Of a DNA stretch of 64,000 bases, positions 7,904-62,794 are shown piece by piece. Numbering within the stretch: position 1 is the first letter of the stretch; the number at the start of each line of letters is the position of its first letter. The notes below the pieces were generated by a model. The model saw only the letters and a program-made list of their open reading frames with translations. It was not told the origin of the DNA and did not search any database. Location: the sequence record NC_061442.1, one strand, 5' to 3'. The translations under genes were made by a program, and so were the position numbers.

Positions 7904-7948
7904 GAATCTGTAAATAAGAGTCAAAGCAACTAACAGGTGTATTTGACC

Positions 7949-9035: not shown

Positions 9036-10295
9036 ATGGCACGTGGATTTGGTGACATTCAGGACAACAGCAAACGTGATAGTCTGCGTGAGTCCGAAAT
9101 CTTTGAAATCTTCCCGCTCTCAAAGAAAGCAAACGGTAACTGGGTATCAATTCGCCTGTTAGATCTCGACCTGCTTCCAATCAAGAAGCACTGGATCAAG
9201 ATCATGGGCGGCAAAGACAAAGATAAAGAAATCAAAATCCCGCGCATGTGCGTTAACTTCGATCCGGATAATCAGGGTAAGCCTCTGAACGGTATGAAGT
9301 GCCCGTACTGCGGTATTGCACACGGCAACGACGAATCTGGTGCGCCAGCGCAGTATGACTATAAGTGGTATGCGCAAGCGATCATCCGTGACGAACAGGC
9401 CGCTGCGCCACGTAAAATGCCAAAGCTCACGAAGAAAGAGCAGAAGTCCGGCAAGAAAGAAATGGGTAGCGAGTCTTGGACTCCTATCATGTGTATTCCT
9501 CTGTCTAACTCTCTGGCCGGTAAGATCAAAGAGCTGGGTGAGCGTAATATTCACACGGTGAAAGACAAGAAATCCGGCAAGAAGTCCAAGCAGGCGTTTC
9601 AGGTCAACCATCCGAAGTACGGTTGTGATATCGAAATCAAATACAACCCGAAAAAATCCCCTGCTGAACGTTACACAATCGAACGTGGCGATCACACACC
9701 ACTGACCGGCGACGAGAAAGAATATCTGACCTGGGACTTCGATAACTGGAACGAGATCTACGATATGCTCGGCCGTCTGAACGAAGAAGCTGCTATGGCT
9801 GACTTCAAGAAGATGGACGTTATCGGCGTTAACACCAACGACTCTGACGATGGTGACGACGAGGACGATGATGACGACATGGCGCTGGGCAGTAAGAAGA
9901 AAGGCGGCAAGGCAGACAAGAAAAAACGTCGCAGCGATGATGACGATGACGATGGTGACGAGGATGATGAAGACGAAGACGATCATCGTCCGTCTAAGTC
10001 TAAAAAGTCCAAGCCGACCAAGTCTCGCAAAATGCTGGATGACGACGAAGATGACGATGACGACGAAGACGATGATCGTCCGTCTAAGTCTAAAAAGTCC
10101 AAGAAGTCCAGCAAAACCTCTAAGTCGTCCAAGAAGTCTAAGAAGTCAGATGATGACGAAGACGAAGACGACAAGCCAGCGAAGAAGAAAAAGAAATCTT
10201 CTGATAAGGTAAAATCGTCCGATAAGAAGAAGAAGAAAAAGTCTTCTGATGATGACGACGACAAGCCTGCGAAAAAGAAAAAGAAGAAAAAGTAA
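9036..10295 (+). CDS. single-stranded DNA-binding protein (T4 gp32-like) with long D/K/S tail
   Basis: SIRLL...KHW...MCV...KCPYC...WYAQAIIRD...GCDIEIKY pattern typical of gp32-like SSBs; lies between sigma and recA. Confidence 0.65.
   Translation: MARGFGDIQDNSKRDSLRESEIFEIFPLSKKANGNWVSIRLLDLDLLPIKKHWIKIMGGKDKDKEIKIPRMCVNFDPDNQGKPLNGMKCPYCGIAHGNDESGAPAQYDYKWYAQAIIRDEQAAAPRKMPKLTKKEQKSGKKEMGSESWTPIMCIPLSNSLAGKIKELGERNIHTVKDKKSGKKSKQAFQVNHPKYGCDIEIKYNPKKSPAERYTIERGDHTPLTGDEKEYLTWDFDNWNEIYDMLGRLNEEAAMADFKKMDVIGVNTNDSDDGDDEDDDDDMALGSKKKGGKADKKKRRSDDDDDDGDEDDEDEDDHRPSKSKKSKPTKSRKMLDDDEDDDDDEDDDRPSKSKKSKKSSKTSKSSKKSKKSDDDEDEDDKPAKKKKKSSDKVKSSDKKKKKKSSDDDDDKPAKKKKKKK
9972..10103 (+). repeat. 42-nt direct repeat (9972-10013 and 10062-10103, one mismatch) in the SSB tail
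   Basis: GACGAAGACGAT(C/G)ATCGTCCGTCTAAGTCTAAAAAGTCCAAG. Confidence 0.9.
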
Positions 10296-21556: not shown

Positions 21557-21817
21557 ATGGTATACGAACGCGAAGAACTCGAAGACATGCCTCTCGATGT
21601 ACTTTATCATCTGGCGAGTGCCAAAGGCCTGCTGGACGATCTGGACGATGATGACGATGCACCTGATCGTGAAGTGCTGGTGGGTATGATTCTTGACGAC
21701 CAGAACGAACAGCAACTGGCTGACGAAGAAGCCGAAGACAAGCAACGTGCCGAAGATGATCGTGATCCACTAATCAATCGCCGTGACGGTCAGGATGGTT
21801 CTGACGACTACTGTTAA
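21557..21817 (+). CDS. small acidic protein with possible Rho-N/HEH-like module
   Basis: ELEDMPLDVLYHLASAKGL...DREVLVGMILDDQ; GGAG SD. Confidence 0.68.
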   Translation: MVYEREELEDMPLDVLYHLASAKGLLDDLDDDDDAPDREVLVGMILDDQNEQQLADEEAEDKQRAEDDRDPLINRRDGQDGSDDYC

Positions 21818-30226: not shown

Positions 30227-30275
30227 AGAGATGAACGCTAGACAGTCGTTTAGCTACTTACATGAGGACATGTAT

Positions 30276-40535: not shown

Positions 40536-40840
40536 TGAAAGGGAAGAAGCTAAACGTATTCTTGCAGCAACGAACGGCAGTAAACAAAGTTGCGTCCAGT
40601 CCACAAGACTGGGAGACGTACAAAGAAATGCTGCTGAACATACGGCTTGCCGTAGCGGTCGACCCGCGCCCTGATGCTGCTATTCGCCATTTGGCTCGTA
40701 CTTGGTATGCTGAATCAAAGTACGCGCTCCCTGTTTGTCAGGCTACGCTTTTAAAACTCATGACGTTGAAGAAAGCAAACCAGACACTCGAAGAAATGAT
40801 TGCTCTTTATATTGACCTAGAGGAAGGAACTGAGAAATGA
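40535..40840 (+). CDS. hypothetical protein
   Basis: TGATG coupling. Confidence 0.62.
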   Translation: MKGKKLNVFLQQRTAVNKVASSPQDWETYKEMLLNIRLAVAVDPRPDAAIRHLARTWYAESKYALPVCQATLLKLMTLKKANQTLEEMIALYIDLEEGTEK

Positions 40841-42051
40841 CCGAAGCTGAACTGAACAACGACTACATCGTTAACGCAGCAAAAACTATCTTCACCGCAG
40901 GGACAGTGCAACAACGTGACGCCTTGCGAACTATCGCTAATACTGTCCTTTCAGGCAAAGCTGCTTTCGCTTACGAAGACTGTTCGTTGGATATTGAAAC
41001 AACGTATCGTCTGTTAGAAGAAATCCAGTTTACTGGTGATGGCCGTCGAATGTTGCCTGCCGATGAAATTGTCGCGCTTGATAACATCTTGCGCAAGAAC
41101 TGGCGCAAAGACTTCTTCACCGCAGTATCGAACATGGCTCTGACTATGTACAGTACAGACCCACGTACTGCTGGACGCGGCTTCTGGCCGACGAGTCATA
41201 GCGAGTGTGCGCTGCTTGTGCATCGTGCGTTCTTGTGGGTTGTCGCCCAGAACGGTCTTACTAATCTGCTGCGTGAGAACTATATGGGTGTGAGTCATAC
41301 TCGCCTGCCTCAGTTTATCGTAGCGTTTCAAGTCGCAGGTAAAGACGAAGGTGTTGCGCGTCATTACACTCTGTATAATGCGCAGGAAGATTGCGGGACC
41401 ATCACTACGAACAATCTTCTGCCTGAGGACTACAAAGAGAAACTGGCGGCAGAGCTTTTAGCGAATCGTCCTGCTGAGTATGATGCCGTAGAGCACATGG
41501 ATTTTGACGAACTGATCGAACTGTGCGAACGTCTGAACGTTATCGGACCAAACTCGACCAAGCGCCAGGCCACTTGCGATTGTAGCATTGACGATGATTG
41601 TGAGTGTGACGAAGAAGACGAGCCTATGACCCGCGACGACTTCGATAAAGATGAAGTCGGTGACCTGCGCGATCACTTCTGGCAGAAGTACGGTTACCCA
41701 GACGACGAGCCTGAAATCCCAGACGAAGATGTGTGGATTCCCGGTGTGTCTCAAATGGAAGTCCGTATCGATCTTCCTGTAGTAACTCTGTCTGACCCAG
41801 ACAAACAGATTGTCCCACGTGCTGGCATGAAGATGAAGTCCCGCGCGAAAAAGCCTATGGGCAAAAGTGAGCCTGTTGTGCTGTCTTACGCCCAACAAAT
41901 CTGGCATGAGCTGGATAGCAAGAAAGAGTTTGGTGATCGTAGTTTCGCAATCACTCTCGTTTCTCGCCATACGTGCGGAGTTAGTCGCGCAGTCGCTACG
42001 ACCCGTGAAGCGCTGGCAATCGCTACTGCACTGATGGATGTAAGCAAATAA
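40837..42051 (+). CDS. hypothetical protein (404 aa) with acidic Cys-rich linker
   Basis: TCDCSIDDDCECDEEDE; stop lies inside promoter box 42044. Confidence 0.75.
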   Translation: MTEAELNNDYIVNAAKTIFTAGTVQQRDALRTIANTVLSGKAAFAYEDCSLDIETTYRLLEEIQFTGDGRRMLPADEIVALDNILRKNWRKDFFTAVSNMALTMYSTDPRTAGRGFWPTSHSECALLVHRAFLWVVAQNGLTNLLRENYMGVSHTRLPQFIVAFQVAGKDEGVARHYTLYNAQEDCGTITTNNLLPEDYKEKLAAELLANRPAEYDAVEHMDFDELIELCERLNVIGPNSTKRQATCDCSIDDDCECDEEDEPMTRDDFDKDEVGDLRDHFWQKYGYPDDEPEIPDEDVWIPGVSQMEVRIDLPVVTLSDPDKQIVPRAGMKMKSRAKKPMGKSEPVVLSYAQQIWHELDSKKEFGDRSFAITLVSRHTCGVSRAVATTREALAIATALMDVSK

Positions 42052-49236: not shown

Positions 49237-50883
49237 ATGTCATTCGATCTTCGTCAAAACTTACTGCTTGTCCGTGACGCTACTCTGACAGGCAAACCGC
49301 TGTTCTATTTCTACAACGCTATGGGTCGTGAGATGGTACTCACAGGTGACGTGCTACGTGAGATTCTTGAGCGTCAGAAAGAAGGTACGCTCTGCACCAA
49401 CACTTACTGGGGTTTTGCTACTGACCCAACACTGGAAGTTTGGTCGTTCGATGATAACAATGACCTAATGCTTCACCATCGCGTAGGCAAGTCCTGCACC
49501 ACATTCCTGCCTTACGAAATGATTGCAAATGCCCATGACGGATTCAAGCCAATCAACGGCATGTTCATTGAAGACAGCCTGCGCCGTATCATTGCTATTC
49601 ACCTAAAGGCGACTTGCCGTGAAGAACAAAAGATTACGTGGTTCGCTGACCTACCTGAGCCTGAGATGCGTAGCATGTTGCTTTCGTTTGGTCTGGGCCC
49701 TCTGCGGGTATCGCGTGAAGACAAAGAAGGTCTGATCAAACTGCATGACCAGTGGCTGGACGACTTCGACGACAAATACAAATATACGCACAACGCAATC
49801 GGCCTCGACGCTGACGAGAAGATTCCTGCTGACTATCGCCCTGAACGTATTCGTGACATTATGAAGCGTATGATGCACAACACCAAGACGCAGAAGATCA
49901 TGGTTCAGACTCTGAATGACCTGTTACGTCAGTGTAGTATCAGGGGCGATATCCCAATGCCTGGCGCCAACTTTAATCTCCAACAGTTGACCTGCTATTA
50001 CGCAACACACTTAATCTTTGCGCACGATGCTGATGCGAAGCTACGCAGCCTGATAGATAATCCTCAGTTTGTTGTCAACTTCATCTACGGTTGGTACCCG
50101 GACTATTCTTGGATTATGGTCAATGAGGAAACGTTCGACTATCAACAATCACTGGTACGCGCCGCGCTGATCTCGTTAAAGCGTCATGTGGAGAATGAAA
50201 TCGGTACGTACAAAATCGTTCACGGCATGGTTAAGTTCGCAGACGGTTTTGACCCTCATGTACCTGAGAAGGTAGAAATCGAAGAAGAGGACTTCGAAGA
50301 GGAAGAGGACCTCGAAGAGGAAGAGGAAGAAACTGACGATCAAGAGAAAGAAGTCATCGACTACCTGCGTACCAAAAGCGAAGATGAATTACGCAAAGTT
50401 GCGACAAGAAAGAAAATGGCGCGTCCTAATAAGTTGAAGTCTATGGACAAAGAAGAATTGATTGAGCTGTGTGCTGACTACTACGGCACTGAGATGCCTG
50501 AAGACTTCGACGAAGAGGAAGAGGAAGAAGAAAAAGAACAGGAGCGTGTGCGCATCGCCCGCAAGTTCCCCGTAGTGTTGCGTTATGATCGCATAGATTA
50601 TGACTATGTTCATCGTGCATTAGTTAAAATGGGCATACTTAAAAAGAACAAGACCCGCAAGCAGATGGACAAATCGCAGAAGCTGACCGTTGCTCAACAA
50701 CACGCCGCACTGCTTGTCACACTCAAAGAAGCTGTCTTGGACTCAGGTCAGGACGTTCTGTCTAAATTGGACGAAATAACGTTGTACCAGCTGGCCGCCT
50801 GCATGACGAAATTGAAAGAAGGTGATAGCTATCCTCGTGACGCTGCGTACCTGAAAGAACTAATTAAACACGCGGTCAAGTAA
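49237..50883 (+). CDS. 548-aa protein with Glu-rich linkers around an HEH-like module
   Basis: YLRTKSEDELRKVATRKKMARPNKLKSMDKEELIELCADY between E-rich tracts. Confidence 0.78.
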   Translation: MSFDLRQNLLLVRDATLTGKPLFYFYNAMGREMVLTGDVLREILERQKEGTLCTNTYWGFATDPTLEVWSFDDNNDLMLHHRVGKSCTTFLPYEMIANAHDGFKPINGMFIEDSLRRIIAIHLKATCREEQKITWFADLPEPEMRSMLLSFGLGPLRVSREDKEGLIKLHDQWLDDFDDKYKYTHNAIGLDADEKIPADYRPERIRDIMKRMMHNTKTQKIMVQTLNDLLRQCSIRGDIPMPGANFNLQQLTCYYATHLIFAHDADAKLRSLIDNPQFVVNFIYGWYPDYSWIMVNEETFDYQQSLVRAALISLKRHVENEIGTYKIVHGMVKFADGFDPHVPEKVEIEEEDFEEEEDLEEEEEETDDQEKEVIDYLRTKSEDELRKVATRKKMARPNKLKSMDKEELIELCADYYGTEMPEDFDEEEEEEEKEQERVRIARKFPVVLRYDRIDYDYVHRALVKMGILKKNKTRKQMDKSQKLTVAQQHAALLVTLKEAVLDSGQDVLSKLDEITLYQLAACMTKLKEGDSYPRDAAYLKELIKHAVK

Positions 50884-50922
50884 GACCTGCGTAAACAATA
50901 CCTAACATTGACGGGAAATAAA

Positions 50923-51345
50923 ATGAAATTTGAACAAAACATTCTGGTAGTAAATCGCATTGCTCTTATCATGGACGACGAATTAGTTCAGAAGTGGGGC
51001 GAAGCTGCAAATGCAAATCGTGACGCTACTGCGTATGCGACGGCCATTATTCTTGCCAAACTCCAGCAGAAGATTATAGCCGCAGTTGCTGAGGAGAATC
51101 CGGAAGCCTGTGTTCGTCCTGAGATATTGTGGACAGACTACGGCTCCATCTCCATCAACGGCCTGTTTATCATTGCGTCGGGTGCGGATGCTGAGTTGTT
51201 GAATCACGTAGAAGACCACGATTACTTGAACCACCTGCACACCATCAAACGTGTTGCTGAGGAGAATGGATTCAAGCTGACGGTTCTCCCTGTGAAGCAC
51301 CTGTTCCCATTCACCAACACTGAAATCCCTGAATCCATGAAGTGA
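50923..51345 (+). CDS. hypothetical protein
   Basis: Start estimated at ATG 50923. Confidence 0.68.
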   Translation: MKFEQNILVVNRIALIMDDELVQKWGEAANANRDATAYATAIILAKLQQKIIAAVAEENPEACVRPEILWTDYGSISINGLFIIASGADAELLNHVEDHDYLNHLHTIKRVAEENGFKLTVLPVKHLFPFTNTEIPESMK

Positions 51346-51653
51346 GGTGCCCTATGTCACACAAACAAATCCTGATGAATGATGTTGCTATCGTCCTAAC
51401 TATGAGTGAGCGCCGCGCGTTCCTCGGACCGAAAGCTGACGGCTTTGTGTATCTGCCATCTAAGGATGCTCTCACGAAATTTGAGGCGCATATCAAGAAG
51501 TATGGCAATCGTGATGACTATGCGTTTATTGACCATCGTGAGCTACATTCTATTAGCTCTGCGGGCATTGTCGCTATTGCTCATGCTGTCGAGTCTGATT
51601 CTGAGCAGCCATGGCTGTGGACGAAAGAAGACTTCCGCGTCAAGCTGTGGTAA
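51342..51653 (+). CDS. hypothetical protein
   Basis: GTGA overlap; alternative ATG at 51354. Confidence 0.62.
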   Translation: MRCPMSHKQILMNDVAIVLTMSERRAFLGPKADGFVYLPSKDALTKFEAHIKKYGNRDDYAFIDHRELHSISSAGIVAIAHAVESDSEQPWLWTKEDFRVKLW

Positions 51654-51706
51654 GCATAAAACTGGCTAAAATCGTGGTATCAGTCTGAACCGTCCTATGA
51701 TATAAT
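51654..51706 (+). promoter_or_regulatory. conserved phage promoter, copy 8
   Basis: GCATAAAACTGGCTAAAAT ... TGATATAAT; 37 nt. Confidence 0.82.
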
Positions 51707-51759
51707 AGAAGCGTAGCTTGTGCTGCGCTTTTTTAACATATGTCTGAGGAGACAACAAA

Positions 51760-52224
51760 ATGCTCGAAGAAATCAAACCAACCCCATCCGACTTAGAACT
51801 GCAAGACCAGATGGTCGATGCGGCCGCCCAGAAGATTATCGAATTGAAACCTGAATGGGTTGACGTTTGTGCCGCAGGTCTGCGCCTGTATCTGTCCGTG
51901 TGTGAACAACTTGGTGGTCCTATTCCTGAATTGCGTTTCGTCCACAACGGCAAGCCATGCCGCATTCAGTTTAACTTGAATGAAGTATCGGAAGGTACCG
52001 AGTTCGTAGCAAATGAAATCGACAAAGAAAAGCAAATGGCAATTGCCGACGAAATGCTGAAAACTGCCGAAGCATGTCCGAACGGCCACTCGCTGCTGGA
52101 TATAGCTATTTGCTCTGGTCGCCTGTTCATGATTGGTTATGACGGCCTTGCAGGTACTCTCGATAAGATCTGCATTCGTTGTAATCAGAAGAACTACACC
52201 ATGAATCTGGTTAAAGGTGAATAA
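51760..52224 (+). CDS. hypothetical early protein with Cys/His cluster
   Basis: First gene after promoter copy 51654; CPNGH...CIRC. Confidence 0.75.
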   Translation: MLEEIKPTPSDLELQDQMVDAAAQKIIELKPEWVDVCAAGLRLYLSVCEQLGGPIPELRFVHNGKPCRIQFNLNEVSEGTEFVANEIDKEKQMAIADEMLKTAEACPNGHSLLDIAICSGRLFMIGYDGLAGTLDKICIRCNQKNYTMNLVKGE

Positions 52225-52225
52225 C

Positions 52226-52885
52226 ATGAAACCTGAATACACTTTACTCAAACGCAGCAAGGTCGATGTTAACCGTTTTGCTTTCGTACATGACGGCAAG
52301 ATACTAGCTAACTTCACCGATGGCCAGTTGTACAGAACATTGGAGAAGCTCGGTCGATCAACATCCTTTAAAGACGTTGATGTGATTTGGAGAGACGGCA
52401 CTCGCACCGTCGAAGAACTGCGAGTGACTGAGCACCGCCACTTTGTTCGTTTTGATACTTGCGAGTACGATCATGCAATCTGTCTGATGATGCGGGCGCA
52501 AGGTCTGCCTGTCGAACTCTCTGTTCCTGTAGACGTGCGTAAGCTGTTTGACGAGCACGGCCCGCTTATTACTTCAATCTGTGTACCTTGTGAACTCGCA
52601 GATGACCTAAAGCCTGCACTTGCGCGTTTCATCCCAGACGAAGATGACGACGAAGATGAAGATGACGACGAGTGGGTTGACTTAGAGGATGATGTAGATG
52701 AAGATGACTTCGGATTCCGCCCAGAAGATTTACGTCCTCAACTGAGTGACTTCGGATATCGTGCCGCGGACTGGGTTGTCACTTTGACTGATGATCAAAT
52801 CAGCGATGTGCATAGTCTTGAAGTCGGTATGGACCCAGATATTGAACTGCCTCGTGCTGATGATGCGAAGGAAGAATTTTTCTAA
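52226..52885 (+). CDS. acidic hypothetical protein
   Basis: AAGGTG SD; D-rich tract. Confidence 0.72.
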   Translation: MKPEYTLLKRSKVDVNRFAFVHDGKILANFTDGQLYRTLEKLGRSTSFKDVDVIWRDGTRTVEELRVTEHRHFVRFDTCEYDHAICLMMRAQGLPVELSVPVDVRKLFDEHGPLITSICVPCELADDLKPALARFIPDEDDDEDEDDDEWVDLEDDVDEDDFGFRPEDLRPQLSDFGYRAADWVVTLTDDQISDVHSLEVGMDPDIELPRADDAKEEFF

Positions 52886-53076
52886 TGAAAACGATTAACG
52901 AACAGGTCAACGAATTGAAACAGCGCGGCGTGCTTATCATCGAAGAACACCAGAAGCATACGCTACCTGATTTGACCTTCACGCTTGATTGTCTGTGTAT
53001 CACTCATACGAAGCGGGAAGTAGAGACAACCACGCGCGGCCGCGTTGTTAAGATTCGCCTGACACACATTCACTAA
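52885..53076 (+). CDS. hypothetical protein
   Basis: TAATG coupling. Confidence 0.55.
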   Translation: MKTINEQVNELKQRGVLIIEEHQKHTLPDLTFTLDCLCITHTKREVETTTRGRVVKIRLTHIH

Positions 53077-53088
53077 CTTTGTGGTCTT

Positions 53089-53163
53089 GGCCCGCCCGTC
53101 CAGAGATGCTCACCCCCAATGAGGTGCCTCGCGCAGAGGCATGACGGTCACCGGGTCCTTTTT
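53089..53163 (+). ncRNA. candidate structured intergenic RNA (multi-branch)
   Basis: Nested GGCCCG/CGGGTC and CCGTC/GACGG stems enclosing two hairpins, then T5. Confidence 0.35.
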
Positions 53164-53218
53164 AGAGCGCACTACCCTAGTACGCTGTACAAAGTAAAAC
53201 AATCAACAGGAGGCTGTT

Positions 53219-53578
53219 ATGAAGTTCAACGAAGTATCCAAAGAGGCGCAAGTCGCCCTAATGTCAAGTGCCTTGGCTGGCGTAATCGAAGCGTTCACGC
53301 GTGAAGATGGAGACGAAGGTCGCAAGATTCTAGTCTTAGCACTCAAGCAAGTCGGTCTGACTGTAGACGAGTTCGGCGCTCTTATCTCTGACTTGTCTCC
53401 AGAAGTTGAGCTTGAAATTGTCAGTGTTATGGAAGCTGCCGATGCAGAGCCGGACGAAGATGACGACGACGAAGAACCTGCTGACGACGACTCTGATACA
53501 GACGCAGACGGCTGGCAGAACCTGCATGAAGATCGCGTGTGTCTTGTATGCAACCATGAAAGCTGCATCTGTCACTAA
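53219..53578 (+). CDS. acidic protein with C-terminal Cys/His cluster
   Basis: AGGAGG SD; VCLVCNHESCICH. Confidence 0.72.
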   Translation: MKFNEVSKEAQVALMSSALAGVIEAFTREDGDEGRKILVLALKQVGLTVDEFGALISDLSPEVELEIVSVMEAADAEPDEDDDDEEPADDDSDTDADGWQNLHEDRVCLVCNHESCICH

Positions 53579-53581
53579 TCT

Positions 53582-53634
53582 GCATAAATCTGGACAAAAC
53601 GACGGTTGTCTCAAATAGCTGCCTGAACTATACT
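53582..53634 (+). promoter_or_regulatory. conserved phage promoter, copy 9
   Basis: GCATAAATCTGGACAAAAC ... TATACT; 37 nt. Confidence 0.75.
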
Positions 53635-53639
53635 ATATA

Positions 53640-53836
53640 GACAGCGAGACAACGTTCTCTCTGAATGCCTTTGTTATGCTTTAGTCGTGTGTTTTCTATT
53701 TTCCCGGGCACACGGCTCTTTTTAGAGTGACTTCACTGAGGTTGCTTTAAAAAGAGTTCGATACTCTTTGAGCGCGTCGGGCTTTACGCGGTTTCCGCCT
53801 TACGTGCTCTCATGCTAAACCGCAAAGGAAATTGAA
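53640..53836 (+). ncRNA. candidate structured 5' leader or small RNA
   Basis: About 200 nt untranslated after promoter 9; 8-bp and 16-bp stems. Confidence 0.4.
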
Positions 53837-54544
53837 ATGCCTACTACTTCATGTCCTAAGACAGAAGACAAGTTCTCCCGTGCTCGCGCTGCTAAGAACT
53901 CTCCTGAGCGTCAGGCCGCGGCCATCAAGAAAACGCCACGAGGACCTTCCTCGGTTCGCCCTAAATCGACGGCAGATCGTGAGCCTAAGATTCGTGACGA
54001 GGAGCGTGTGTACAATCTCGTACATGCAATTCTGAGCGCGTGGAAAGCTGATGTGGGACATGCTGAAAACACGGCAGCATCTGCTGGTATCATCAAAGTG
54101 TCACGTCGTAATATTGAAGGTGCCCTGCGTGACCTCAAGAATACGCGCTTCACTAAAATCCCGACGCTCATTAACGATATCTTGACAGGCTCCGATATCT
54201 GCGCTGAGTTTGGTCGTTGGGTATACGTCGAGCACGATAGCCCTGATTGGATTTTCGTGCGTCTGCCTGAAAACAGCACACCTGTGATTCGTGCTGATGT
54301 AAGCGTAGGTAAAACGGACGAAACGGCAACGTCCGTGACGACCTCTAGCGAAGTGCTTCTGGAAGCGTTCGAGGCCAGTGACGACGAAATTGAGATACTC
54401 GAATGTAACGATCAGGATATTGAAGACCTCGAATCTGCTGGGATGCGCAAGCGTCTGATAGATGCGAAAATCATCAAACCGGAAGCTGCCTCGAAGCTGT
54501 CACGCAATGACTTAATGAAGCTCTGCGCGTACTACAGCGCATAA
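53837..54544 (+). CDS. protein with basic N-terminus and C-terminal HEH-like module
   Basis: AAAGGA SD; ends DIEDLESAGMRKRLIDAKIIKPEAASKLSRNDLMKLCAYYSA. Confidence 0.75.
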   Translation: MPTTSCPKTEDKFSRARAAKNSPERQAAAIKKTPRGPSSVRPKSTADREPKIRDEERVYNLVHAILSAWKADVGHAENTAASAGIIKVSRRNIEGALRDLKNTRFTKIPTLINDILTGSDICAEFGRWVYVEHDSPDWIFVRLPENSTPVIRADVSVGKTDETATSVTTSSEVLLEAFEASDDEIEILECNDQDIEDLESAGMRKRLIDAKIIKPEAASKLSRNDLMKLCAYYSA

Positions 54545-54592
54545 GCAATAATAAGCAGGCAGTCTACATGCTGCCTGCTATCTGCGAAGTAT

Positions 54593-54646
54593 GCAGAAAA
54601 CTGGACAAAATCGTGGTTGTTATCTGACGGCCACCTATGCTATAAT
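54593..54646 (+). promoter_or_regulatory. conserved phage promoter, copy 10
   Basis: GCAGAAAACTGGACAAAAT ... TGCTATAAT; 38 nt. Confidence 0.8.
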
Positions 54647-54703
54647 AGATTCAGACGCAATAGTGCGTCGCAAACAAAACACTTATACTGAGGAGTATTA
54701 ATC

Positions 54704-56323
54704 ATGGCACGTATCGAAACTAACACTAACCTGGTTGGCAAAACTATCGTCCTGCTGAACGGCACCAAAGCTAAAATCGAAGATGCAATCGCGTCTGGTT
54801 ACAAAGTGAAAGGCCAGACCAAGCGTATCGCCACTCGCTGCGTTATCAAAGAAGGCGCTCACTTTAAAGAAATCGAGCGCATGAACATGAGCCAGCTGGA
54901 AGATACAGGCGAAGGTTACGTGAAGCTGAAAGATGCGAAAGCTGCGAAAGCGTCAACCAAGAAACCTTCTGCGAAAGAGAAGGCGCCAAAAGCAGGCAAG
55001 AAAGCCGCCCAGCCAGCGAAAGAAAAAGAACCTAAGGTTCGTCGCAAATCTTCTAAAGAGAAAGAAGACGAATATCAGGACTTGGCTCACGCTATCATCA
55101 AAGGTGGTAAACGTGCGGCGCCTGTTGAAATCGCTGAGATCGACGGCGACCTGACTGACTGCGTTGCTCAACGTCTGGTAGACGTGCTGAATAATAGCGA
55201 AGTTGCGAAGCTGTGCGCTGATAACAAAACGCCGATCGCAAACGCAATTGAAGTGACGTACGGCGCTGAGTTCGCCCCTGAGACCAACGTCATGCAGATC
55301 ACGCTGAGTCTGCAATACGCTAAGCCTGTTCAAACGCTGTCACGTCCGACGCTGGAAAACGCAGAAGCTATCGCGTTACGTGCTGAGAAAATGGCGGCGC
55401 CTAAGCTGTCGATGAAACTCAAGAAAGCGATTCGTGAAGCATTCAGCCTCGAAGACGCGAATGACCTTGAGCTTGGAACTGTGTTGCTGTCTGACGGCGC
55501 TGAATTTGTTTACTTCGGCGAATCTGCGAAGCATGTCGGCAAAGCGCTGCTGTATGTTGTAGAGACCGACAAGTTCAAATCTGTGCTGGGCTCTACGCTG
55601 GGTGAGTACGAAATCCCAGACGCAGAGGAAGAAGAGGAAGAGGAGGAAGAAGTTGAAGACGAATCCGAAGAGGAGGAAGAAGAAGACGGCGAAGAAGAAG
55701 ACGGCGAAGAAGAAGACGGCGAAGAAGAAGACGGCGAAGAAGAAGACGGCGAAGAAGAAGACGGCGAAGAAGATTCTGCCGAATACGACTACGTTGCCGT
55801 GAACAAAGATCAGCTCGATATGGTCAACAAGAAAGTGACCGCTAAGTATCACGCTGCGCTGGCCGAACGTTTCAACACGACCGAAGAAGTTCTGATTCCG
55901 GGTCTGGTACTAACAGACGGCGAAACAACCTTCGCTTACCTGGGTTGCGATAGCAAAGGCGGTCTGCTGGTAATCGACTGTGGTGATGACGGCGAAGGCG
56001 AAGACGTGCTGATGTATAGCAAGTCTGATATCAAGTCTCTGGATGACTTCAATCCTGTGATGGGCGAAGCTGACGAAGACGGCGAAGAATCAGACGGCGG
56101 CGAAGAATCAGACGATGAAGATCTGGACGAAGAAGACGGCGAAGAAGAAGAAGAAGACGGCGAAGATGACGACTTCGACTTTGACGATGTGCCAGAAGCT
56201 GATATCGAAGATCTGACCGAAGACGAACTGCGTGACCGCGTAGTCGAAGCCGGCCTGACCACTCCGCGTAAAGCTGAGAACATGAATGAAGCTAAACTGC
56301 GCAAGCTGCTGAAAAGCGCATAA
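54704..56323 (+). CDS. Glu/Asp-rich multidomain protein (acidic paralog), C-terminal HEH-like module
   Basis: First gene after promoter copy 54593; (EDGEE)6; shares N- and C-terminal domains with 56406-57665. Confidence 0.82.
   Translation: MARIETNTNLVGKTIVLLNGTKAKIEDAIASGYKVKGQTKRIATRCVIKEGAHFKEIERMNMSQLEDTGEGYVKLKDAKAAKASTKKPSAKEKAPKAGKKAAQPAKEKEPKVRRKSSKEKEDEYQDLAHAIIKGGKRAAPVEIAEIDGDLTDCVAQRLVDVLNNSEVAKLCADNKTPIANAIEVTYGAEFAPETNVMQITLSLQYAKPVQTLSRPTLENAEAIALRAEKMAAPKLSMKLKKAIREAFSLEDANDLELGTVLLSDGAEFVYFGESAKHVGKALLYVVETDKFKSVLGSTLGEYEIPDAEEEEEEEEEVEDESEEEEEEDGEEEDGEEEDGEEEDGEEEDGEEEDGEEDSAEYDYVAVNKDQLDMVNKKVTAKYHAALAERFNTTEEVLIPGLVLTDGETTFAYLGCDSKGGLLVIDCGDDGEGEDVLMYSKSDIKSLDDFNPVMGEADEDGEESDGGEESDDEDLDEEDGEEEEEDGEDDDFDFDDVPEADIEDLTEDELRDRVVEAGLTTPRKAENMNEAKLRKLLKSA
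55682..55771 (+). repeat. perfect 15-bp tandem repeat x6 (GAAGACGGCGAAGAA = EDGEE)
   Basis: Read directly from the sequence. Confidence 0.95.
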
Positions 56324-56405
56324 CGAACTACCGTAACTACGAAATAGTGTGCGGCTCTTACTGGGTCGCATATTTGACAAATAAAGCTGATTGAGGAATC
56401 ACACT

Positions 56406-57665
56406 ATGTCAAACGCAAACAAAATTCTGCTTAACGCTCGTGTACGCCGTTTAGATGGGACCATTACTTACATCAACAAAGTGAACGCTAACGGCTATAG
56501 CACCGATGCGAAAGGCCCGCAGATTCCTGTGAAACGCATTGTGCTTGCAGGCAAAACGCTCAAAGAGATTGAAGCGCCGTTCGAGAGAGGCGAGTATATC
56601 ATTGTACAGGGCATTGCAGTGAAACTGAACAAGCGCCAGCAACGTGAACTTGCAGACAAGACGCTGGATGAGAAAGCGCTGCGTCCTGACTTCGGGCGTC
56701 TGGCGTTCATTGACCGCGACGACGGCAAAGCAACTGACGGTAAGAAAGTGAAGCCGAAAGCTGCGAAGAAAGAAGGCGGGTTGAAAGCGACTCGTAAGCA
56801 GAACGGCGATACACGCACAAAGAAAGAGCGTAAGGCAGAAGCTGCCGCCGCCGCTGAATCGCTCGACACAATCAAGTCAACTCCAGTTGATCGCAAGGGC
56901 GAACTGATAGCGACCATCGACGCGACCATTGAAGACGCGACAAGCAAAGAGCGCCGTAAGTTGTTGTCTGAATCGTTCGACATGGACTGGAAAGACATTA
57001 AGAAGCACGGCGGTAAGGGTGTCGTTAAACATCTGGGCCGTAAAGCTGCGCAATCTGCCGTAAGCAAAATGCGCGCGACTGTTACGCAGGACGCATTCAT
57101 TAAGCAGATGCCTGCTGAGTTGAAGCGCTTGATTCAAGATCGTCGGCTCGTACTGAACAAGCGCCAGATTGAAGCTGTGCTCTCTGCGCTTGGGCTTGAT
57201 GTGAAGTTCTATAACATCGCCATGCAGACGTTGCTTGGCAATCTGTCGCTGGCTGTAGACGACACGCTGGCTGACGACAAAGCAGATAAGAAAGTGAAGA
57301 AGCTGAAAAAGCATAAAGCCTCTAAGCCGCAGTATCTGTCAGAGAAAGACCAGCAACGTCGTATGAAGAAAATGAAAGTGAAGCTGCTGGCTCCTACTGA
57401 GAAAGGCATGAAGAAAGCCAAAGCGAAATTGAAGCAGGCGAAAGTTACGCTTGCCGACAAGCTGGGCATCTCGCCGAAAGAAATCAAACGCGGTCTGATT
57501 GCATACCGTCCTAACGGCGTTGATTACATGTTTGTTGCCAGTGATGCTCGCGGCCCAATCTTCATCGACAAAGACGGTGACCCGTGCGTGTATACTTACG
57601 AGAATCTCGAATCGACATTCGACTTCCGTCTGACTCAACCTTCTGAACTGGACGCTACTGTATGA
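56406..57665 (+). CDS. Lys-rich multidomain protein (basic paralog)
   Basis: GAGGA SD before ATG 56406; K-rich linkers. Confidence 0.82.
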   Translation: MSNANKILLNARVRRLDGTITYINKVNANGYSTDAKGPQIPVKRIVLAGKTLKEIEAPFERGEYIIVQGIAVKLNKRQQRELADKTLDEKALRPDFGRLAFIDRDDGKATDGKKVKPKAAKKEGGLKATRKQNGDTRTKKERKAEAAAAAESLDTIKSTPVDRKGELIATIDATIEDATSKERRKLLSESFDMDWKDIKKHGGKGVVKHLGRKAAQSAVSKMRATVTQDAFIKQMPAELKRLIQDRRLVLNKRQIEAVLSALGLDVKFYNIAMQTLLGNLSLAVDDTLADDKADKKVKKLKKHKASKPQYLSEKDQQRRMKKMKVKLLAPTEKGMKKAKAKLKQAKVTLADKLGISPKEIKRGLIAYRPNGVDYMFVASDARGPIFIDKDGDPCVYTYENLESTFDFRLTQPSELDATV

Positions 57666-58045
57666 CCAACAATGAGATCATCCTGACTGGTGTTTTCGCT
57701 CAACTGTATTCGCGGCTAGTAATGGCCGCTATACAGCGCGTCCATGTATACTACTCTGATCTCGCTCCTGTGGTGTTTGGTGTGCAGTTCACTCGCGTAG
57801 GGAAAGCGCAGTACAAAGCACTGGAGGCGCTCATTGCCGAGACGATGCGCCTCGATATTCAAAACGGCAGGCCACCACTTGCGGCCTTATACGTGTCACG
57901 CGCAAACGACACCAAGAAACCTACCCAGTCATTCTTCAATGAGTATCTCAAATTGACTGGCAAATATCTTTCTGACGATGAATGGTTGATGCTCGTTGAA
58001 CATGTGTGGAAACAATATACACCAGACCTTCGGGAGCCATCATGA
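57662..58045 (+). CDS. hypothetical protein
   Basis: ATGA overlap. Confidence 0.68.
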   Translation: MTNNEIILTGVFAQLYSRLVMAAIQRVHVYYSDLAPVVFGVQFTRVGKAQYKALEALIAETMRLDIQNGRPPLAALYVSRANDTKKPTQSFFNEYLKLTGKYLSDDEWLMLVEHVWKQYTPDLREPS

Positions 58046-58503
58046 AAAAGTCAAAAGTTGTAATCAGTCGCGGTGGGTATCGACCCGTCTCGCCGGAAGA
58101 GGCCAAGAAGTTGGTTGTTGAAATGCTGCTTGCTTCAATCGGCGTTAACCCAACGATTATGAGCCAGCAGATGTTGCTGAACATTGCGAACTACAATTAC
58201 CTCACGTCTATCGCAGACACGGGTAAGGCAAATACAGCGAACCAGATAGTTCTACATAAAACTGTAAAAGAACTTAATGCGTTCTGTAGATTGCACAAGA
58301 TTCCTCTGGGCTTACTAATTATGCCCCATACATCGGCGAGCGATTACTCCGGTGACGAGGTTGTAGCGATTCCCTGGGAGTCTGTGCGCAAGAATGCACC
58401 GAGCCAGTCCGCTGTCAACTCCCTGTTCCAAACAGTCGAAGCTGATGGCTATCCGCAGTTTGTGACTGATGCGAAAACAGTAGAGGACTACAATGTTTTA
58501 TGA
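58042..58503 (+). CDS. hypothetical protein
   Basis: GGGAG SD; ATGA overlap. Confidence 0.68.
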   Translation: MKKSKVVISRGGYRPVSPEEAKKLVVEMLLASIGVNPTIMSQQMLLNIANYNYLTSIADTGKANTANQIVLHKTVKELNAFCRLHKIPLGLLIMPHTSASDYSGDEVVAIPWESVRKNAPSQSAVNSLFQTVEADGYPQFVTDAKTVEDYNVL

Positions 58504-59773
58504 TCACGTATTCAGCCATGACGAGAAGCAACTTCTCTTGTCTGTAGCTGAGTCTAAATATCTGGTGCGGCTTGATTGCCCTGAGTATTTGAAGAAATCA
58601 AAACACTCGATTGAAATTCGTCATACAGTGACCAACCGTGGCGAACAACGTCGAAGCGGTGTTATCAATACAACGTTTGTACCGCGTATTCATGCCTCAA
58701 CTGTGCAGCGCCTGTTACGTGAGATTCGTGACAACGCAACTATCAGTTCGGCTAACAGCCTTGCCTCGTTATTTGAACTTGGGCTTGGCGTACCGAAGCA
58801 ACGTGATATCGCAACGTACTTGCACGACTACTCTCGGGAGAATGACAAGAAGGGCGTTGGTATCAAGTACATCCGCAAACTGATTAACGAGTATCACCGC
58901 AAGCACCGTCATAGTTTTGCTGGCAGTCGCTGGATGATGCCTGCTGCGTATACAGCGAACATGCTGAACATGCAGTCTTTCATTCATCTGAAAGAAAACG
59001 GCTACAGCAAGAAAGTGAAAGTGCCTGACGGTCTGCCTGTTGTTCTGATCTATCAGAATACGAATCACGCCGAAGCTGAGTTCTCTATGTGTGACGCCTT
59101 CGCTATTAGCCCTCTGGGTTATCCGATGCCGTTCGCCCAGATTGCGATGCGCCCTGAGTTCAAAGCTGCGCCGAAGACCTTTCAATCTAAAGCGCTGCGT
59201 GGGCAAGGCATGTATAGCATGATCATGGGTATCGTTCACTGGGACAAAGGTGACGCACTGACGAACATACGCGAACTGAACGCCATTGACGACGAGCCGT
59301 ACCTGACGTTGTTGTGTGACGAGCAATACGCAGATCGTCGTTCGCCTGAGTATCAGAAGCTGCTGGACAAACGTGCTGAGTTTGCTGAACAGCGGCATGA
59401 GTGGGCAGAAGTGATTGCGAAGTATGGCAACACAACTCGCACACTCAAGCCCAAGCAGTTAGAGCGACTGGAGCAGGCAGAGAACTTCTTCAAAGAACGC
59501 AAAACGTTTATGGACGAGTTTGATAAGTTCGAGAAGAAAGAGAACCATCAGGCTGCTAAGAAGTTTGCAGTAGCCAGTGCGAAGTTCGCTGCCGTTGATT
59601 GTGGAACTATTGCTGACCGTTCGACGTATATGTCAGTAGCGTCGGGCCTCGACAAAGTTAATAAGATTCTCACTAAGTGGGGATTCACCACGGTTGATAC
59701 TGTTAATAGTAGTTTGAAGAAGTCTATCCTTACATTCGACCCAACAACCGCTACTCGCGTGTGGTCACTGTAA
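58493..59773 (+). CDS. hypothetical protein (426 aa)
   Basis: GAGGA SD. Confidence 0.75.
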   Translation: MFYDHVFSHDEKQLLLSVAESKYLVRLDCPEYLKKSKHSIEIRHTVTNRGEQRRSGVINTTFVPRIHASTVQRLLREIRDNATISSANSLASLFELGLGVPKQRDIATYLHDYSRENDKKGVGIKYIRKLINEYHRKHRHSFAGSRWMMPAAYTANMLNMQSFIHLKENGYSKKVKVPDGLPVVLIYQNTNHAEAEFSMCDAFAISPLGYPMPFAQIAMRPEFKAAPKTFQSKALRGQGMYSMIMGIVHWDKGDALTNIRELNAIDDEPYLTLLCDEQYADRRSPEYQKLLDKRAEFAEQRHEWAEVIAKYGNTTRTLKPKQLERLEQAENFFKERKTFMDEFDKFEKKENHQAAKKFAVASAKFAAVDCGTIADRSTYMSVASGLDKVNKILTKWGFTTVDTVNSSLKKSILTFDPTTATRVWSL

Positions 59774-59797
59774 ACCTTTTATCTGAGGAGATAACGT

Positions 59798-62794
59798 ATG
59801 TCGGAAAATAACCTGGGCGCTGCTGCAACCTTCGGCTCTGAGACTCAAAAGCAATTAAACGACCAACAGCGTCGTGCGCATTCTGCTGAGTCCGGCCACG
59901 TAAACAAATGTACCATCGTCGTTCTTACTGCGCTTAACGCGCATGGTCGATTCTCTTACCTGACTGCTGACGAGCAACTGCGTGAGCGTTCAATCGAAGG
60001 TAAGGTGATGGACCGTCTGCCGGATCTGATTGGCCGTGCATCGGGTCCTTCTACTGATCCGAACAGCGCGTACCACATCCTGCATCCAAACAATGGCGTG
60101 CCTACTCGTATCGACGAGCGTATCAAAGTTGGCGAAGCGGATTCGGTCATCATTTCATATACTGTAAATAAAGCAGTGTCAGAGATGTATGGCAGTTTAT
60201 CGCTGGCGCTGTTTAGTGCTGGTGAAAGTGATATCGCTGATTTGGCGGCTGAGTATGGTATTCACTCCATCTCAATCGTCGAAGAGGCGAAAGCGCCTGA
60301 CTATATCAAAGCTCTTACTGAACAGGTAGAAGCTCTGAATATTGTAAATCTCACTAGCATTGATGAAGCTGACGGTGCTTTTGAGAAACCAGTAATCAAC
60401 TACAGCGCCCTGCCGGGTAATCCAATCAACGTACTGTCCGGCGCTGTGCGTACTTTCATTATGCAAACTCTAAACGGCGAAGTATTCGCTGCGATTCCAA
60501 ATAACGGAGAACTGAACGTGAAACAACCTACTAACGCAACGCCGGTCAATCTGGACGAAGACTTCGATTCAGAAGACGAAGTGGTTGATCAGCAGGGCGG
60601 CGAAAGCGACGACGAAGAAGTGACAGGCACTGACCTGTTCGGCTATAAAGCTGAAACACTGACCGTCGCGCAAATGACAGAAGCTCTTGAAGCTCTGTCC
60701 TACGATGTTAGCGCGATGGACGAAGCGGGCATCCGTGAGTCGTTCGAAACTGAACAGCAAATCTGGATGGAAGGTAACGACGCTGCCGAAGAAGACGGCG
60801 AAGAAGAAGATGCCGAAGACGAAGAAGAATCTGATGATGAAGATTCCGAATTCGATCCTTCTCTGTATCTGGGCCACCTGCTGTCTGCTGACCAGCTGGA
60901 CCGTTCTGCACTGAAAGTTCTGGTGCGTACTCAAGACCTCAAAGTCATGAAGTCCGACACCGAAGAAACGCTGACTGCGAAACTGCTCGAACTGGTCGAA
61001 GGTGCAACCGAGCAGGAAATGGCTGAACTGATTGACACCTTCGTAGGCGCGCTGCAAGAGCGTGAGATCGATTGTCCTAACCTGCTGGCCGCGCTGTCGT
61101 CTGACGAAGACGAAGAAGAAGACGCGGAAGAGTCAGAAGAAGAAGATGAAGAAGAATCTGAGGATGAAGAATCCGAAGATGAAGATGATTCTGATTCTGT
61201 GCAAGACCAGATCGATGCCGTTACTGACCCGCTCGACTACTTCCAGTTCGCTGGTGGTTCGCTGACTGCTGAACAGCGTGTTGCTGCTGTCGAAGCGATG
61301 GGCGAAGACGTTACCGGCTTGAACATCGTGCAGGTAATGAAAGCGTTCTCTCGCATTCAGGGTCAGACTAACGAAATCGACGTTGACGCAGAAGAAAGCG
61401 AAAGCAACGTTGCTGAACTCGAAGCGCTGCTGGGCCAGTACGACGATGCTACCGTGCAGCACGTCGCAGAAAGCCTGGGCGTTAACGTTGACGAATGCGA
61501 AACCGCAGAAGACATGATCGAAGCGATTGTCAATGGCGGTACCGAAGACCAGTTCGCTGCGGTTGAAGAAATCGCAACCAGCTACGGTGTTGACCTGTCA
61601 GAAGTTGCTGACGGCGAAGACCTGGACTTTGTTGACGCGGTTCTGTCTGTGCTGCCGTCCTTCCTGTCAGACGACGAGCAGGAAGAAGATGAAGAAGATG
61701 AAGAATCTGAGGAAGAAGAATCCGAAGACGGCGAAGAAGAAGATGAAGACGAGCAGGACTCTGAGATCGATTCTTCTGAAAACGAAAGCCTGAAATTCAT
61801 CAAGTCTGTTAACTCTGACAACGCCGTGGGCACTCTGCTGGCAGTCGATATGGATCAGACTGTAGTTATCAACTTTACTCTGACTGACGGCGATACCTAC
61901 AGCGCTGTTGAATCTGAGCTGGTCGATATCAATGGTTTCAACTACCGCTTCCCATTCAACCTGGGCAAAGCGTCTAAAGGTACTGCGCCGGGTTCAATGC
62001 TGCTGCCAGCTCAATCCCTGCTGGACATTGTTGAGCGCGTGAACACTACTCGCTTCCTTGCCGATCCGAAAACGTTCGACATTGGCGCATGGGCTGAAAG
62101 TCTGGAAGCAACGCTGGCAGAAGAAATTCCTGTCGCGCTGTATGCAGATCGTATTGAAGACGGCGTTGACCCAAGCGAAGCTGGTCTGGTTGTTGGTGAC
62201 TTCCTCGACGAAGAAGAACTGGAAGCCGCAACTGAGCTGGGTCACATCGACGCTGACGATGCCTCTGAACTGAACGGCGATCATCTGCCACTGGCAAGCC
62301 TGTATAACGCTCGCTCTCGCGTTCGCCCGGTTCGTGTAGACAGCGCTTACGTTGCACTGCACACCACAGTGATGAACGTCGCACTGCCTGGCTTCTGGAG
62401 CGAAGCACCTGTACAGCGCATGATTCAGGCGGCAGTTAACCGTGTCATCAATCTGGCTGAATCTGTTGAGAACGTTAAAGTGTATGCTGCGTTCACCATG
62501 GAGTCTGCTGCACTGCTGAACAACGGCCGTCTGTTTGAAGCGCTGGCAACTCTGCGTGAGTTTGAGCACGTCCAGTCTTACTCTGCTGCTGACGCTGCTA
62601 ACTTCGACGATGCCGAAGACGTGATCGAAGTAGCTGGTTCACTCGACACCCGTGACCTGCCGCTGTCTGTACTGGCTGGTGGTCTGGCTGGCGCATCGTT
62701 CGACAACGGCGGTGACCTGACCATTCTGGTTCCGTGCTTCACACAAGAAGAAGACGCGGACGAAGAAGAAGGCGACGACGGCGACGACGAATAA
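59798..62794 (+). CDS. 998-aa hyper-acidic protein with several two-helix modules
   Basis: GAGGAG SD; alternating E/D tracts and short helical repeats. Confidence 0.82.
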   Translation: MSENNLGAAATFGSETQKQLNDQQRRAHSAESGHVNKCTIVVLTALNAHGRFSYLTADEQLRERSIEGKVMDRLPDLIGRASGPSTDPNSAYHILHPNNGVPTRIDERIKVGEADSVIISYTVNKAVSEMYGSLSLALFSAGESDIADLAAEYGIHSISIVEEAKAPDYIKALTEQVEALNIVNLTSIDEADGAFEKPVINYSALPGNPINVLSGAVRTFIMQTLNGEVFAAIPNNGELNVKQPTNATPVNLDEDFDSEDEVVDQQGGESDDEEVTGTDLFGYKAETLTVAQMTEALEALSYDVSAMDEAGIRESFETEQQIWMEGNDAAEEDGEEEDAEDEEESDDEDSEFDPSLYLGHLLSADQLDRSALKVLVRTQDLKVMKSDTEETLTAKLLELVEGATEQEMAELIDTFVGALQEREIDCPNLLAALSSDEDEEEDAEESEEEDEEESEDEESEDEDDSDSVQDQIDAVTDPLDYFQFAGGSLTAEQRVAAVEAMGEDVTGLNIVQVMKAFSRIQGQTNEIDVDAEESESNVAELEALLGQYDDATVQHVAESLGVNVDECETAEDMIEAIVNGGTEDQFAAVEEIATSYGVDLSEVADGEDLDFVDAVLSVLPSFLSDDEQEEDEEDEESEEEESEDGEEEDEDEQDSEIDSSENESLKFIKSVNSDNAVGTLLAVDMDQTVVINFTLTDGDTYSAVESELVDINGFNYRFPFNLGKASKGTAPGSMLLPAQSLLDIVERVNTTRFLADPKTFDIGAWAESLEATLAEEIPVALYADRIEDGVDPSEAGLVVGDFLDEEELEAATELGHIDADDASELNGDHLPLASLYNARSRVRPVRVDSAYVALHTTVMNVALPGFWSEAPVQRMIQAAVNRVINLAESVENVKVYAAFTMESAALLNNGRLFEALATLREFEHVQSYSAADAANFDDAEDVIEVAGSLDTRDLPLSVLAGGLAGASFDNGGDLTILVPCFTQEEDADEEEGDDGDDE

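Follow-up and report, generated by a model that had tools for sequence, protein, structure and literature searches.

Why do several otherwise unrelated acidic proteins of one jumbo phage share a helical module of about 40 residues? The question is raised by a stretch of 64,000 nucleotides (nt) from Erwinia phage pEa_SNUABM_35, referred to below as the window, which spans genome positions 186001–250000 on the + strand and is 100% identical to the database record (MZ443788 / NC_061442). The phage belongs to Alexandravirus and has a genome of 261,719 bp encoding 336 phage proteins. All genes within window positions 49237–62794 are annotated as "hypothetical protein" in the record, whose gene numbers (gp) are used here, and Pfam and PHROG scans of the proteins carrying the module matched only families of unknown function. 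An earlier note on this DNA had suggested that the module is a portable docking tag with a helix-extension-helix (HeH) fold, which recruits its carriers to one structure. Here, we report that the module constitutes a sequence family of its own, with five copies in four proteins of this phage, that it behaves as an exchangeable cassette, and that in other phages it is associated with genes for single-stranded-DNA-binding proteins (SSBs) and recombinases. It may act as a tethered tag that brings its carriers to the nucleoprotein formed by single-stranded DNA (ssDNA), SSB, and recombinase.

The three clear copies pointed out by the earlier note are present in gp309, gp316, and gp317. A hidden Markov model profile of these copies, run against the six-frame translation of the genome, significantly matched two further copies, both in gp325 (domain E-values 2e-8 and 3e-5; 4.6e-14 for the whole protein), and nothing besides gp325 below E 0.3. 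Iteration of the profile converged at once, giving a genome total of exactly five copies in four proteins, a smaller set of carriers than the earlier note had listed. The same five copies in four orthologues were observed in phages Alexandra and pEa_SNUABM_33. For gp294 (window positions 40837–42051), only a 14-residue fragment was matched (E 0.02–0.7), which is not significant. The carriers and their copies, in window positions unless stated otherwise, are:

49237..50883, + strand: gp309, the first carrier, 548 residues, an open reading frame (ORF) annotated as a hypothetical protein
50356..50487, + strand: module copy of gp309, residues 374–417, internal, matched by the profile
53837..54544, + strand: gp316, the second carrier, 235 residues, with P0009 and the L021 and L022 proteins as orthologues
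54413..54541, + strand: module copy of gp316, residues 193–235, C-terminal, matched by the profile
54704..56323, + strand: gp317, the third carrier, 539 residues, net charge −81, PHROG 33433
56198..56320, + strand: module copy of gp317, residues 499–539, C-terminal, the sequence used for folding
Genome 250465–251250, about 465 nt beyond the window end: gp325, the fourth carrier, with two copies, matched by the profile

The five copies are not explained by composition. When a profile of 46 detected copies was rebuilt with each carrier family omitted in turn, the omitted families were still recovered, with E-values of 6.4e-7 for gp309, 5.8e-5 for gp316, 3.3e-13 for gp317, and 1.5e-13 and 1.3e-12 for the two copies of gp325. 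Reversed sequences scored at most 6.8 bits and ten locally shuffled genome translations at most 11.6 bits, compared with 50 bits for gp325; hence, a shared acidic or helical composition does not account for the match.

The carriers differ in layout. A globular N-terminal part of 345 residues in gp309 is followed by an acidic tract, the module, a second acidic tract, and a helical C-terminal part; no Pfam match was found in this protein, and an Atlas lookup of its N-terminus gave no usable lead. The smaller gp316 has a basic N-terminus, a conserved core of 170 residues, and at its C-terminus the most divergent subtype of the module. In gp317, a small N-terminal domain, a Lys-rich linker, two internal domains, and two long Asp/Glu tracts (nt 55619–55789 and 56066–56173) precede the C-terminal module. 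The claim that each copy sits beside an acidic tract holds for four of the five: Asp/Glu tracts border the gp309 copy on both sides (nt 50275–50352 and 50500–50544), lie upstream of the gp317 copy, and accompany both gp325 copies. It fails for the gp316 copy, which has no more than a mildly acidic stretch ahead of it. Among the 46 detected copies, 24 have a strong tract (at least eight Asp or Glu in ten residues) within 25 residues, and 20 end at most 12 residues from the C-terminus of the protein. The module with its immediate flanks carries a mean net charge of −5 (range −11 to +2).

What fold does the module adopt? An AlphaFold2 model of the gp317 sequence, based on an alignment of 14 copies, has a mean predicted local distance difference test (pLDDT) score of 85 and contains helices at residues 13–22, 28–33, and 36–45, the middle one being short and situated in the linker. 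A Foldseek search of the PDB with this model yielded nothing significant. VIA, an exhaustive structural search over 48,161 PDB chains, placed residues 1–41 of Rho (1a62) at rank 2 (Z 5.7, root-mean-square deviation 1.9 Å, 41 aligned residues), and about twenty of its top 50 entries are SAP or LEM domains. Matches at Z 3.2–4.2 include SAP domains of Ku70, SLX4, FAN1, PIAS1, Hcc-1, MKL1, Tho1, and MANF and LEM domains of emerin and LAP2; further entries in the top 50 are E1B-AP5 and CDNF, and the C-terminal domain of T4 endonuclease VII matches at Z 4.5. The assignment to the HeH fold class rests mainly on this enrichment of SAP and LEM domains among the matches to a 46-residue model. The model indeed contains two approximately parallel helices joined by an extended linker and superposable on such domains, at modest Z-scores of 3–6.

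The HeH fold proposed in the earlier note is thus supported by structure, whereas membership in the corresponding Pfam families is not. Neither the carriers nor the isolated modules reach the cut-off of any Pfam model. SAP (PF02037, cut-off 23.9 bits) has no match at E ≤ 10 in the whole genome or in the five modules, its best score, in the relative P0012, being a sub-threshold 20.5 bits (E 3.6e-4). The lowest E-value of Rho_N (PF07498, cut-off 24.9 bits) across 26 module proteins is 0.047, obtained for a single protein; LEM (PF03020) gives E 0.4 on the gp317 module and HeH (PF12949) E 0.37 on P0012. All these sub-threshold matches fall within one clan. Given the absence of any Pfam model at cut-off and the HeH structure, the module is assigned to a known fold but forms a sequence family that is new, i.e., as judged from the model, a divergent, Pfam-invisible HeH (SAP / Rho-N / LEM) mini-fold of about 42 residues. 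Searches against sequences of PDB chains added little: one profile of the module found nothing meaningful, and a partial match of the 14-copy profile to a Nudix ADP-ribose pyrophosphatase (E 0.004) was taken as chance, since it sits inside another fold.

The module consists of a first helix, a short turn-helix of basic character, and a third helix. Of the positions compared over 43 non-redundant copies, the first Asp never varies, and Leu10, Ala25, Leu33, and Leu36 hardly do; helix 1 has an E-L-R signature, with G-L at the end, as in SAP and Rho_N. Positions 21–27 form a Lys-rich turn around a conserved Ala, with 40–65% Lys or Arg.

Comparison with known domains places the module close to several of them. 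The N-terminal bundle of Rho is the best small-domain match, having the same spacing of helix, extended linker, and helix, but it differs from the module, which has the Lys-rich middle turn, the invariant leading Asp, and poly-acidic surroundings. SAP domains (Ku70, PIAS1, FAN1, SLX4, Tho1, SAF-A), which are accessory modules in DNA-repair proteins, are likewise two-helix motifs of approximately 35–45 residues with the same signature residues; compared with them, the inter-helix linker of the module is about five residues longer and forms the short extra helix, and the unit is net acidic. LEM domains (emerin, LAP2, Heh1/2) belong to the same fold class (Z 3.8 for emerin LEM, 3.2 for LAP2 LEM and LEM-like), and show that such a fold may have a protein (BAF) as its docking partner instead of DNA. 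LEM proteins, in contrast, are eukaryotic, reside at the inner nuclear membrane, and show no sequence relationship to the module; we know of no BAF-like partner in phages. Finally, T4 endonuclease VII is a phage DNA-junction enzyme, whose matching C-terminal domain (1e7d, residues 103–157) contributes to a dimer interface and DNA-binding surface of the enzyme, unlike a tethered tag, and has no sequence similarity to the module.

The family is rare. When 1.84 billion representative proteins were searched with a profile, 29 matched at E < 1e-3, three of them unrelated repeats; the remaining 26 or so genuine proteins are all phage-like and comprise orthologues of the four carriers along with others that have one to four copies beside acidic tracts. 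The gp325 family is found in 51 GenBank phage records, which span Alexandravirus, Yoloswag, Y3, further pEa_SNUABM phages, Dickeya phage AD1, and one Yersinia phage. Each copy in the window is closest to its positional orthologues in other phages (53–90% identity) and not to copies from the same genome; hence, the copies are old and individually maintained.

Nevertheless, the module can be replaced in orthologous carriers. The gp309 orthologue of pEa_SNUABM_33 retains 78–97% identity over residues 1–320 and drops to 25–47% over residues 321–520, and its module resembles the second gp325 copy (approximately 63–66% at the protein level, 66% at the DNA level) rather than the gp309 copy. The gp316 orthologues of pEa_SNUABM_16/28 and of a metagenomic relative (L021) conserve their first 173 residues, at 88% and 74% identity, and end, past the acidic tract, in a different unit that also looks like helix-linker-helix. 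In these genomes, the gp316-type module is encoded by a nearby free-standing gene of 48 or 75 residues, and in pEa_SNUABM_16/28 an extra inserted gene of 149 residues shares the alternative ending. The rearranged locus lies at:

L022:5778-7147 (pEa_SNUABM_16) and L021:5105-6298: rearranged gp316 locus

Judging by the sequences, this rearrangement looks like a cassette exchange or the insertion of a mobile gene. The alternative unit aligns with the module in register at a marginal E of 0.011, and its profile finds nothing in the pEa_SNUABM_35 genome. The replacement in gp309, together with the gp316 variants and the free-standing genes, indicates that the tag behaves as an exchangeable cassette and can exist alone. 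The earlier description of the module as portable therefore stands, and is further borne out by its fusion to an SSB of the DUF669 type elsewhere. As far as it could be searched, the literature on Alexandravirus, on phage SAP and HeH domains, on DUF669, and on the sister phages does not describe the module. The HeH fold is already known, and DUF669 fusions with SAP or Rho_N are labelled in databases; the sequence family, its restriction to few lineages, its cassette-like exchange, and its place in the SSB-recombinase gene pair appear to be undescribed so far.

With which functions is the module associated outside pEa_SNUABM_35? In P0006, a protein of 439 residues, four copies follow an N-terminal DUF669-like domain (Atlas feature score 0.92, TM 0.79), and its gene directly follows genes for a PD-(D/E)XK nuclease and AAA_24 ATPase, with a family-A polymerase encoded upstream. 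DUF669 proteins have been experimentally shown to be SSBs with an acidic, flexible C-terminal part that work with an AAA partner, and truncation of this acidic part reduces recombination, for which the authors suggest a contact with RecA (PMC13687109). The Atlas neighbour cluster contains 442 phage proteins in which DUF669 is joined to canonical SAP or Rho_N, i.e., these domains fill the C-terminal slot held by the module in P0006. The siphophages Lebethron, P744, and Tlacuache have the order polymerase, Cas4-like exonuclease, Sak4-like protein, and DUF669-like protein, as around P0006; their DUF669-like proteins contain two acid-flanked repeats with sub-threshold Rho_N scores of 16–17 bits, and an alignment of these tail repeats with the module profile covers 38 columns (P 4.5e-4).

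The second association is with the SSB-recombinase gene pair. On a 137-kb phage contig (L011), the gene order is sigma factor (PHROG 17569), SSB (PHROG 15004), P0015, and UvsX-like recombinase (PHROG 97), where P0015 is a protein of 168 residues with two module copies that matches the PHROG family of gp325. In L012/L013, the order is SSB, P0026, and UvsX-like recombinase; P0026 is also a two-copy protein, different from P0015 and assigned to a separate cluster at 50% identity, and the L011 and L012 phages are two divergent phages. One more gp325 relative, P0010, follows a gp324 homologue on a distant contig, as gp325 does in pEa_SNUABM_35. The window has the same order of sigma factor (7937–8986), SSB, and UvsX, with nothing between the latter two genes:

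9036..10295, + strand: phage SSB, PHROG 15004, 419 residues
10354..12888, + strand: UvsX-like/RecA-family recombinase, 844 residues, directly after the SSB

The C-terminal tail of this SSB, about 150 residues long, alternates poly-Asp/Glu with poly-Lys/Ser blocks and is a block polyampholyte; a shorter tail of this type is present on the homologous SSB of L011. The UvsX-like recombinase exceeds the PHROG 97 profile by about 350 residues, and no intein or endonuclease domain was flagged in it.

Another multi-copy protein, P0003 of a metagenomic phage (L005:1868-3358), has 496 residues and three module copies behind an N-terminal domain of 290 residues. A likeness of this domain to the core of T4 gp32, noted by eye, found no confirmation in phmmer searches against the PDB, in PHROGs, or by tblastn; relatives of the domain are restricted to hypothetical proteins of phages of Bacteroidota (Bacteroides, Chryseobacterium).

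The explanation that we favour is that the module is a tethered docking tag of a kind found in the acidic tails of phage ssDNA-binding proteins. Usually hanging on a flexible poly-Asp/Glu linker, and often placed at the very C-terminus, the tag would have spread to four proteins in this phage lineage and would bring gp309, gp316, gp317, and the two-copy gp325 to the nucleoprotein of ssDNA, SSB, and recombinase at which the phage replicates and recombines its DNA. On the combined evidence, we tentatively give this reading a probability of about 0.45. The analysis establishes the family and its copy number, its fold class and portability, and, in other phages, its genomic link to SSB and recombinase genes; that the module binds anything, and what it binds, we infer. 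A protein ligand, such as the SSB, the UvsX-like recombinase, or another part of the replisome, is somewhat more likely than naked DNA, because the unit is net acidic and lies beside polyanionic tracts and because SSB tails are protein hubs. The acidic tails of E. coli SSB (SSB-Ct), T7 gp2.5, T4 gp32 (A-domain), and the DUF669 protein Gp63 are flexible poly-acidic hubs of protein recruitment; P0006 embeds four modules in such a tail, and L011 and L012 encode a module protein between SSB and recombinase. The classical tails end in a short linear motif and not in folded mini-domains, whereas in pEa_SNUABM_35 the tag is carried by four non-SSB proteins.

Several observations weigh against a docking tag for the SSB-recombinase nucleoprotein. 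The SSB tail encoded in the window contains no copy. The module genes of pEa_SNUABM_35 lie 40–55 kb downstream of SSB and UvsX and are not adjacent to them. Four of the nine gene contexts from outside this phage were informative, the others being short contigs. The structural Z-scores of 4–6 are within the range for which the tool warns of a common helical arrangement. Moreover, as gp309, gp316, and gp317 have no recognisable function, their link to replication is by association only.

Could the module instead bind double-stranded DNA directly? As a SAP-like domain, it would contact the phosphate backbone through its Lys-rich turn, and the poly-Asp/Glu tract would act as an intramolecular competitor or auto-inhibitor, in the manner of the acidic HMGB1 tail towards the HMG boxes of that protein. 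DNA binding is classical for SAP and LEM-like domains, and among the best structural neighbours of the module are SAP domains from the DNA-repair proteins Ku70, FAN1, and SLX4 as well as the C-terminal domain of T4 endonuclease VII. The 40–65% of Lys and Arg at positions 21–27 stand out in an otherwise acidic unit, and fusion of such a domain to an SSB would provide recognition of junctions between single- and double-stranded DNA. On the other hand, the module with its flanks is on average acidic, the long polyanionic tracts beside it should repel DNA, and the basic residues are only moderately conserved, the invariant position being an Asp. Direct DNA binding remains a serious rival on account of the Lys-rich turn and the SAP neighbours from DNA repair, although we consider it unlikely.

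A different reading starts from charge. Here, the modules would be "stickers" in a charge-driven condensate or chromatin-like phase that organises the DNA of this putatively nucleus-less jumbo phage and concentrates replication, recombination, and topoisomerase activities on it, the tag admitting client proteins. Its constituents would be the hyper-acidic gp317, gp322, and gp325, the hyper-basic gp318, gp324, and gp326, and the block-polyampholyte tail of the SSB. The window positions of two of these are:

56406-57665: gp318, net charge +34
59798..62794, + strand: gp322, 998 residues, hyper-acidic, net charge −193, without a match to the module profile

Charges in this cluster are indeed extreme (−193 for gp322, −91 for gp325, and −81 for gp317 versus +34 for gp318, +27 for gp326, and +15 for gp324), the SSB tail alternates oppositely charged blocks, proteins of several phages are multivalent with two to four module copies, and the gp324-gp325 gene pair is kept in a distant contig. 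At the same time, charged low-complexity SSB tails are common without condensate formation, and the condensate reading is wholly inferential: literature and sequencing-run searches gave no data on localisation, phase separation, or expression, the latter retrieving only small shares in unrelated metagenomes and no RNA-seq of infection. We regard it as quite improbable.

Least probable of all is that the module has no specific ligand and is a stable helical bead that structures or solubilises acidic linkers, its recurrence reflecting duplication and drift: such a bead would agree with the lack of a known partner and with helix-capping Asp/Glu and core Leu/Val/Ala making up most of the conserved positions, but positional orthologues are retained over deep divergence while the adjoining linkers vary freely, the module persists on its own in genes of 48–75 residues, and it is swapped for another HeH-looking unit at the same position, all of which points to a selected function of the unit itself.

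The module provides an entry point to a block of about 20 "hypothetical" genes conserved across approximately 50 genomes of Erwinia, Dickeya, and Yersinia jumbo phages. It defines a rare, Pfam-invisible HeH family, in which mini-domains on poly-acidic tethers form an exchangeable C-terminal cassette of phages linked to SSB tails and to the SSB-recombinase gene pair. The isolated 42-residue tag would be a convenient bait, and a ligand, if found, would allow the four carriers and the 998-residue polyanion gp322 to be placed in the replication and recombination biology of putatively non-nucleus-forming jumbo phages. A condensate, if it did exist, would serve in place of a phage nucleus of the chimallivirus type, with neither a membrane nor a shell.

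Is the module more widespread within the window, as had been claimed on the basis of weaker copies in a small acidic ORF and, several times, in gp322? Neither claim withstood the profile searches. Against the module profile, the ORF reaches −0.9 bits, and its hhalign probability is 0.6% over half a module; with the alternative HeH-looking unit of the sister phages, it aligns in register at a marginal E of 0.016 (30% identity over 43 columns). For gp322, no domain was found with the module profile even at a database size of one (Z=1), and the alignment of its orthologues gave profile-profile probabilities of 0.2–0.3% against three HeH-type profiles. The features concerned are:

21557..21817, + strand: small acidic ORF, claimed weaker copy, membership in the module family not supported
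61391..61669, + strand: two helix-linker-helix units in gp322, residues 532–624, with weak structural matches only

The helical islands of gp322 are almost invariant among sister phages, and the Asp/Glu linkers between them differ in length. A model of residues 354–624 is poor (mean pLDDT 56), as only three close sequences were available, and is usable only for residues 532–624 (pLDDT 68–85). Against this part, VIA listed the C-terminal domain of T4 endonuclease VII (Z 6.2), which also matches the module, the FAN1 SAP region (Z 6.1), the N-terminus of Rho (Z 4.9), and the SAP domain of plant SIZ1 (Z 4.6). The model hints that gp322 may hold HeH-like units of another sequence type, with Z-scores within the range for which the tool warns that the arrangement may be a common helical one.

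Some minor features surround the carriers. The N-terminal domains of gp317 and gp318, of about 52 residues, are similar (BLASTP E 0.002), and another small domain is similar by eye; by sequence, the two proteins look like adjacent paralogues of opposite charge. A scan for sigma-70-type promoters showed no enrichment over shuffled sequences in the region. Its best site (54617–54646, 10 of 12 matches, with an extended −10 element) lies 58 nt upstream of gp317, just after a hairpin with a 9-bp stem (54554–54579). Elsewhere, the window also encodes a PD-(D/E)XK nuclease (1277–2425), a radical-SAM protein (30231–31724), and a UvdE UV-endonuclease (37655–38635).

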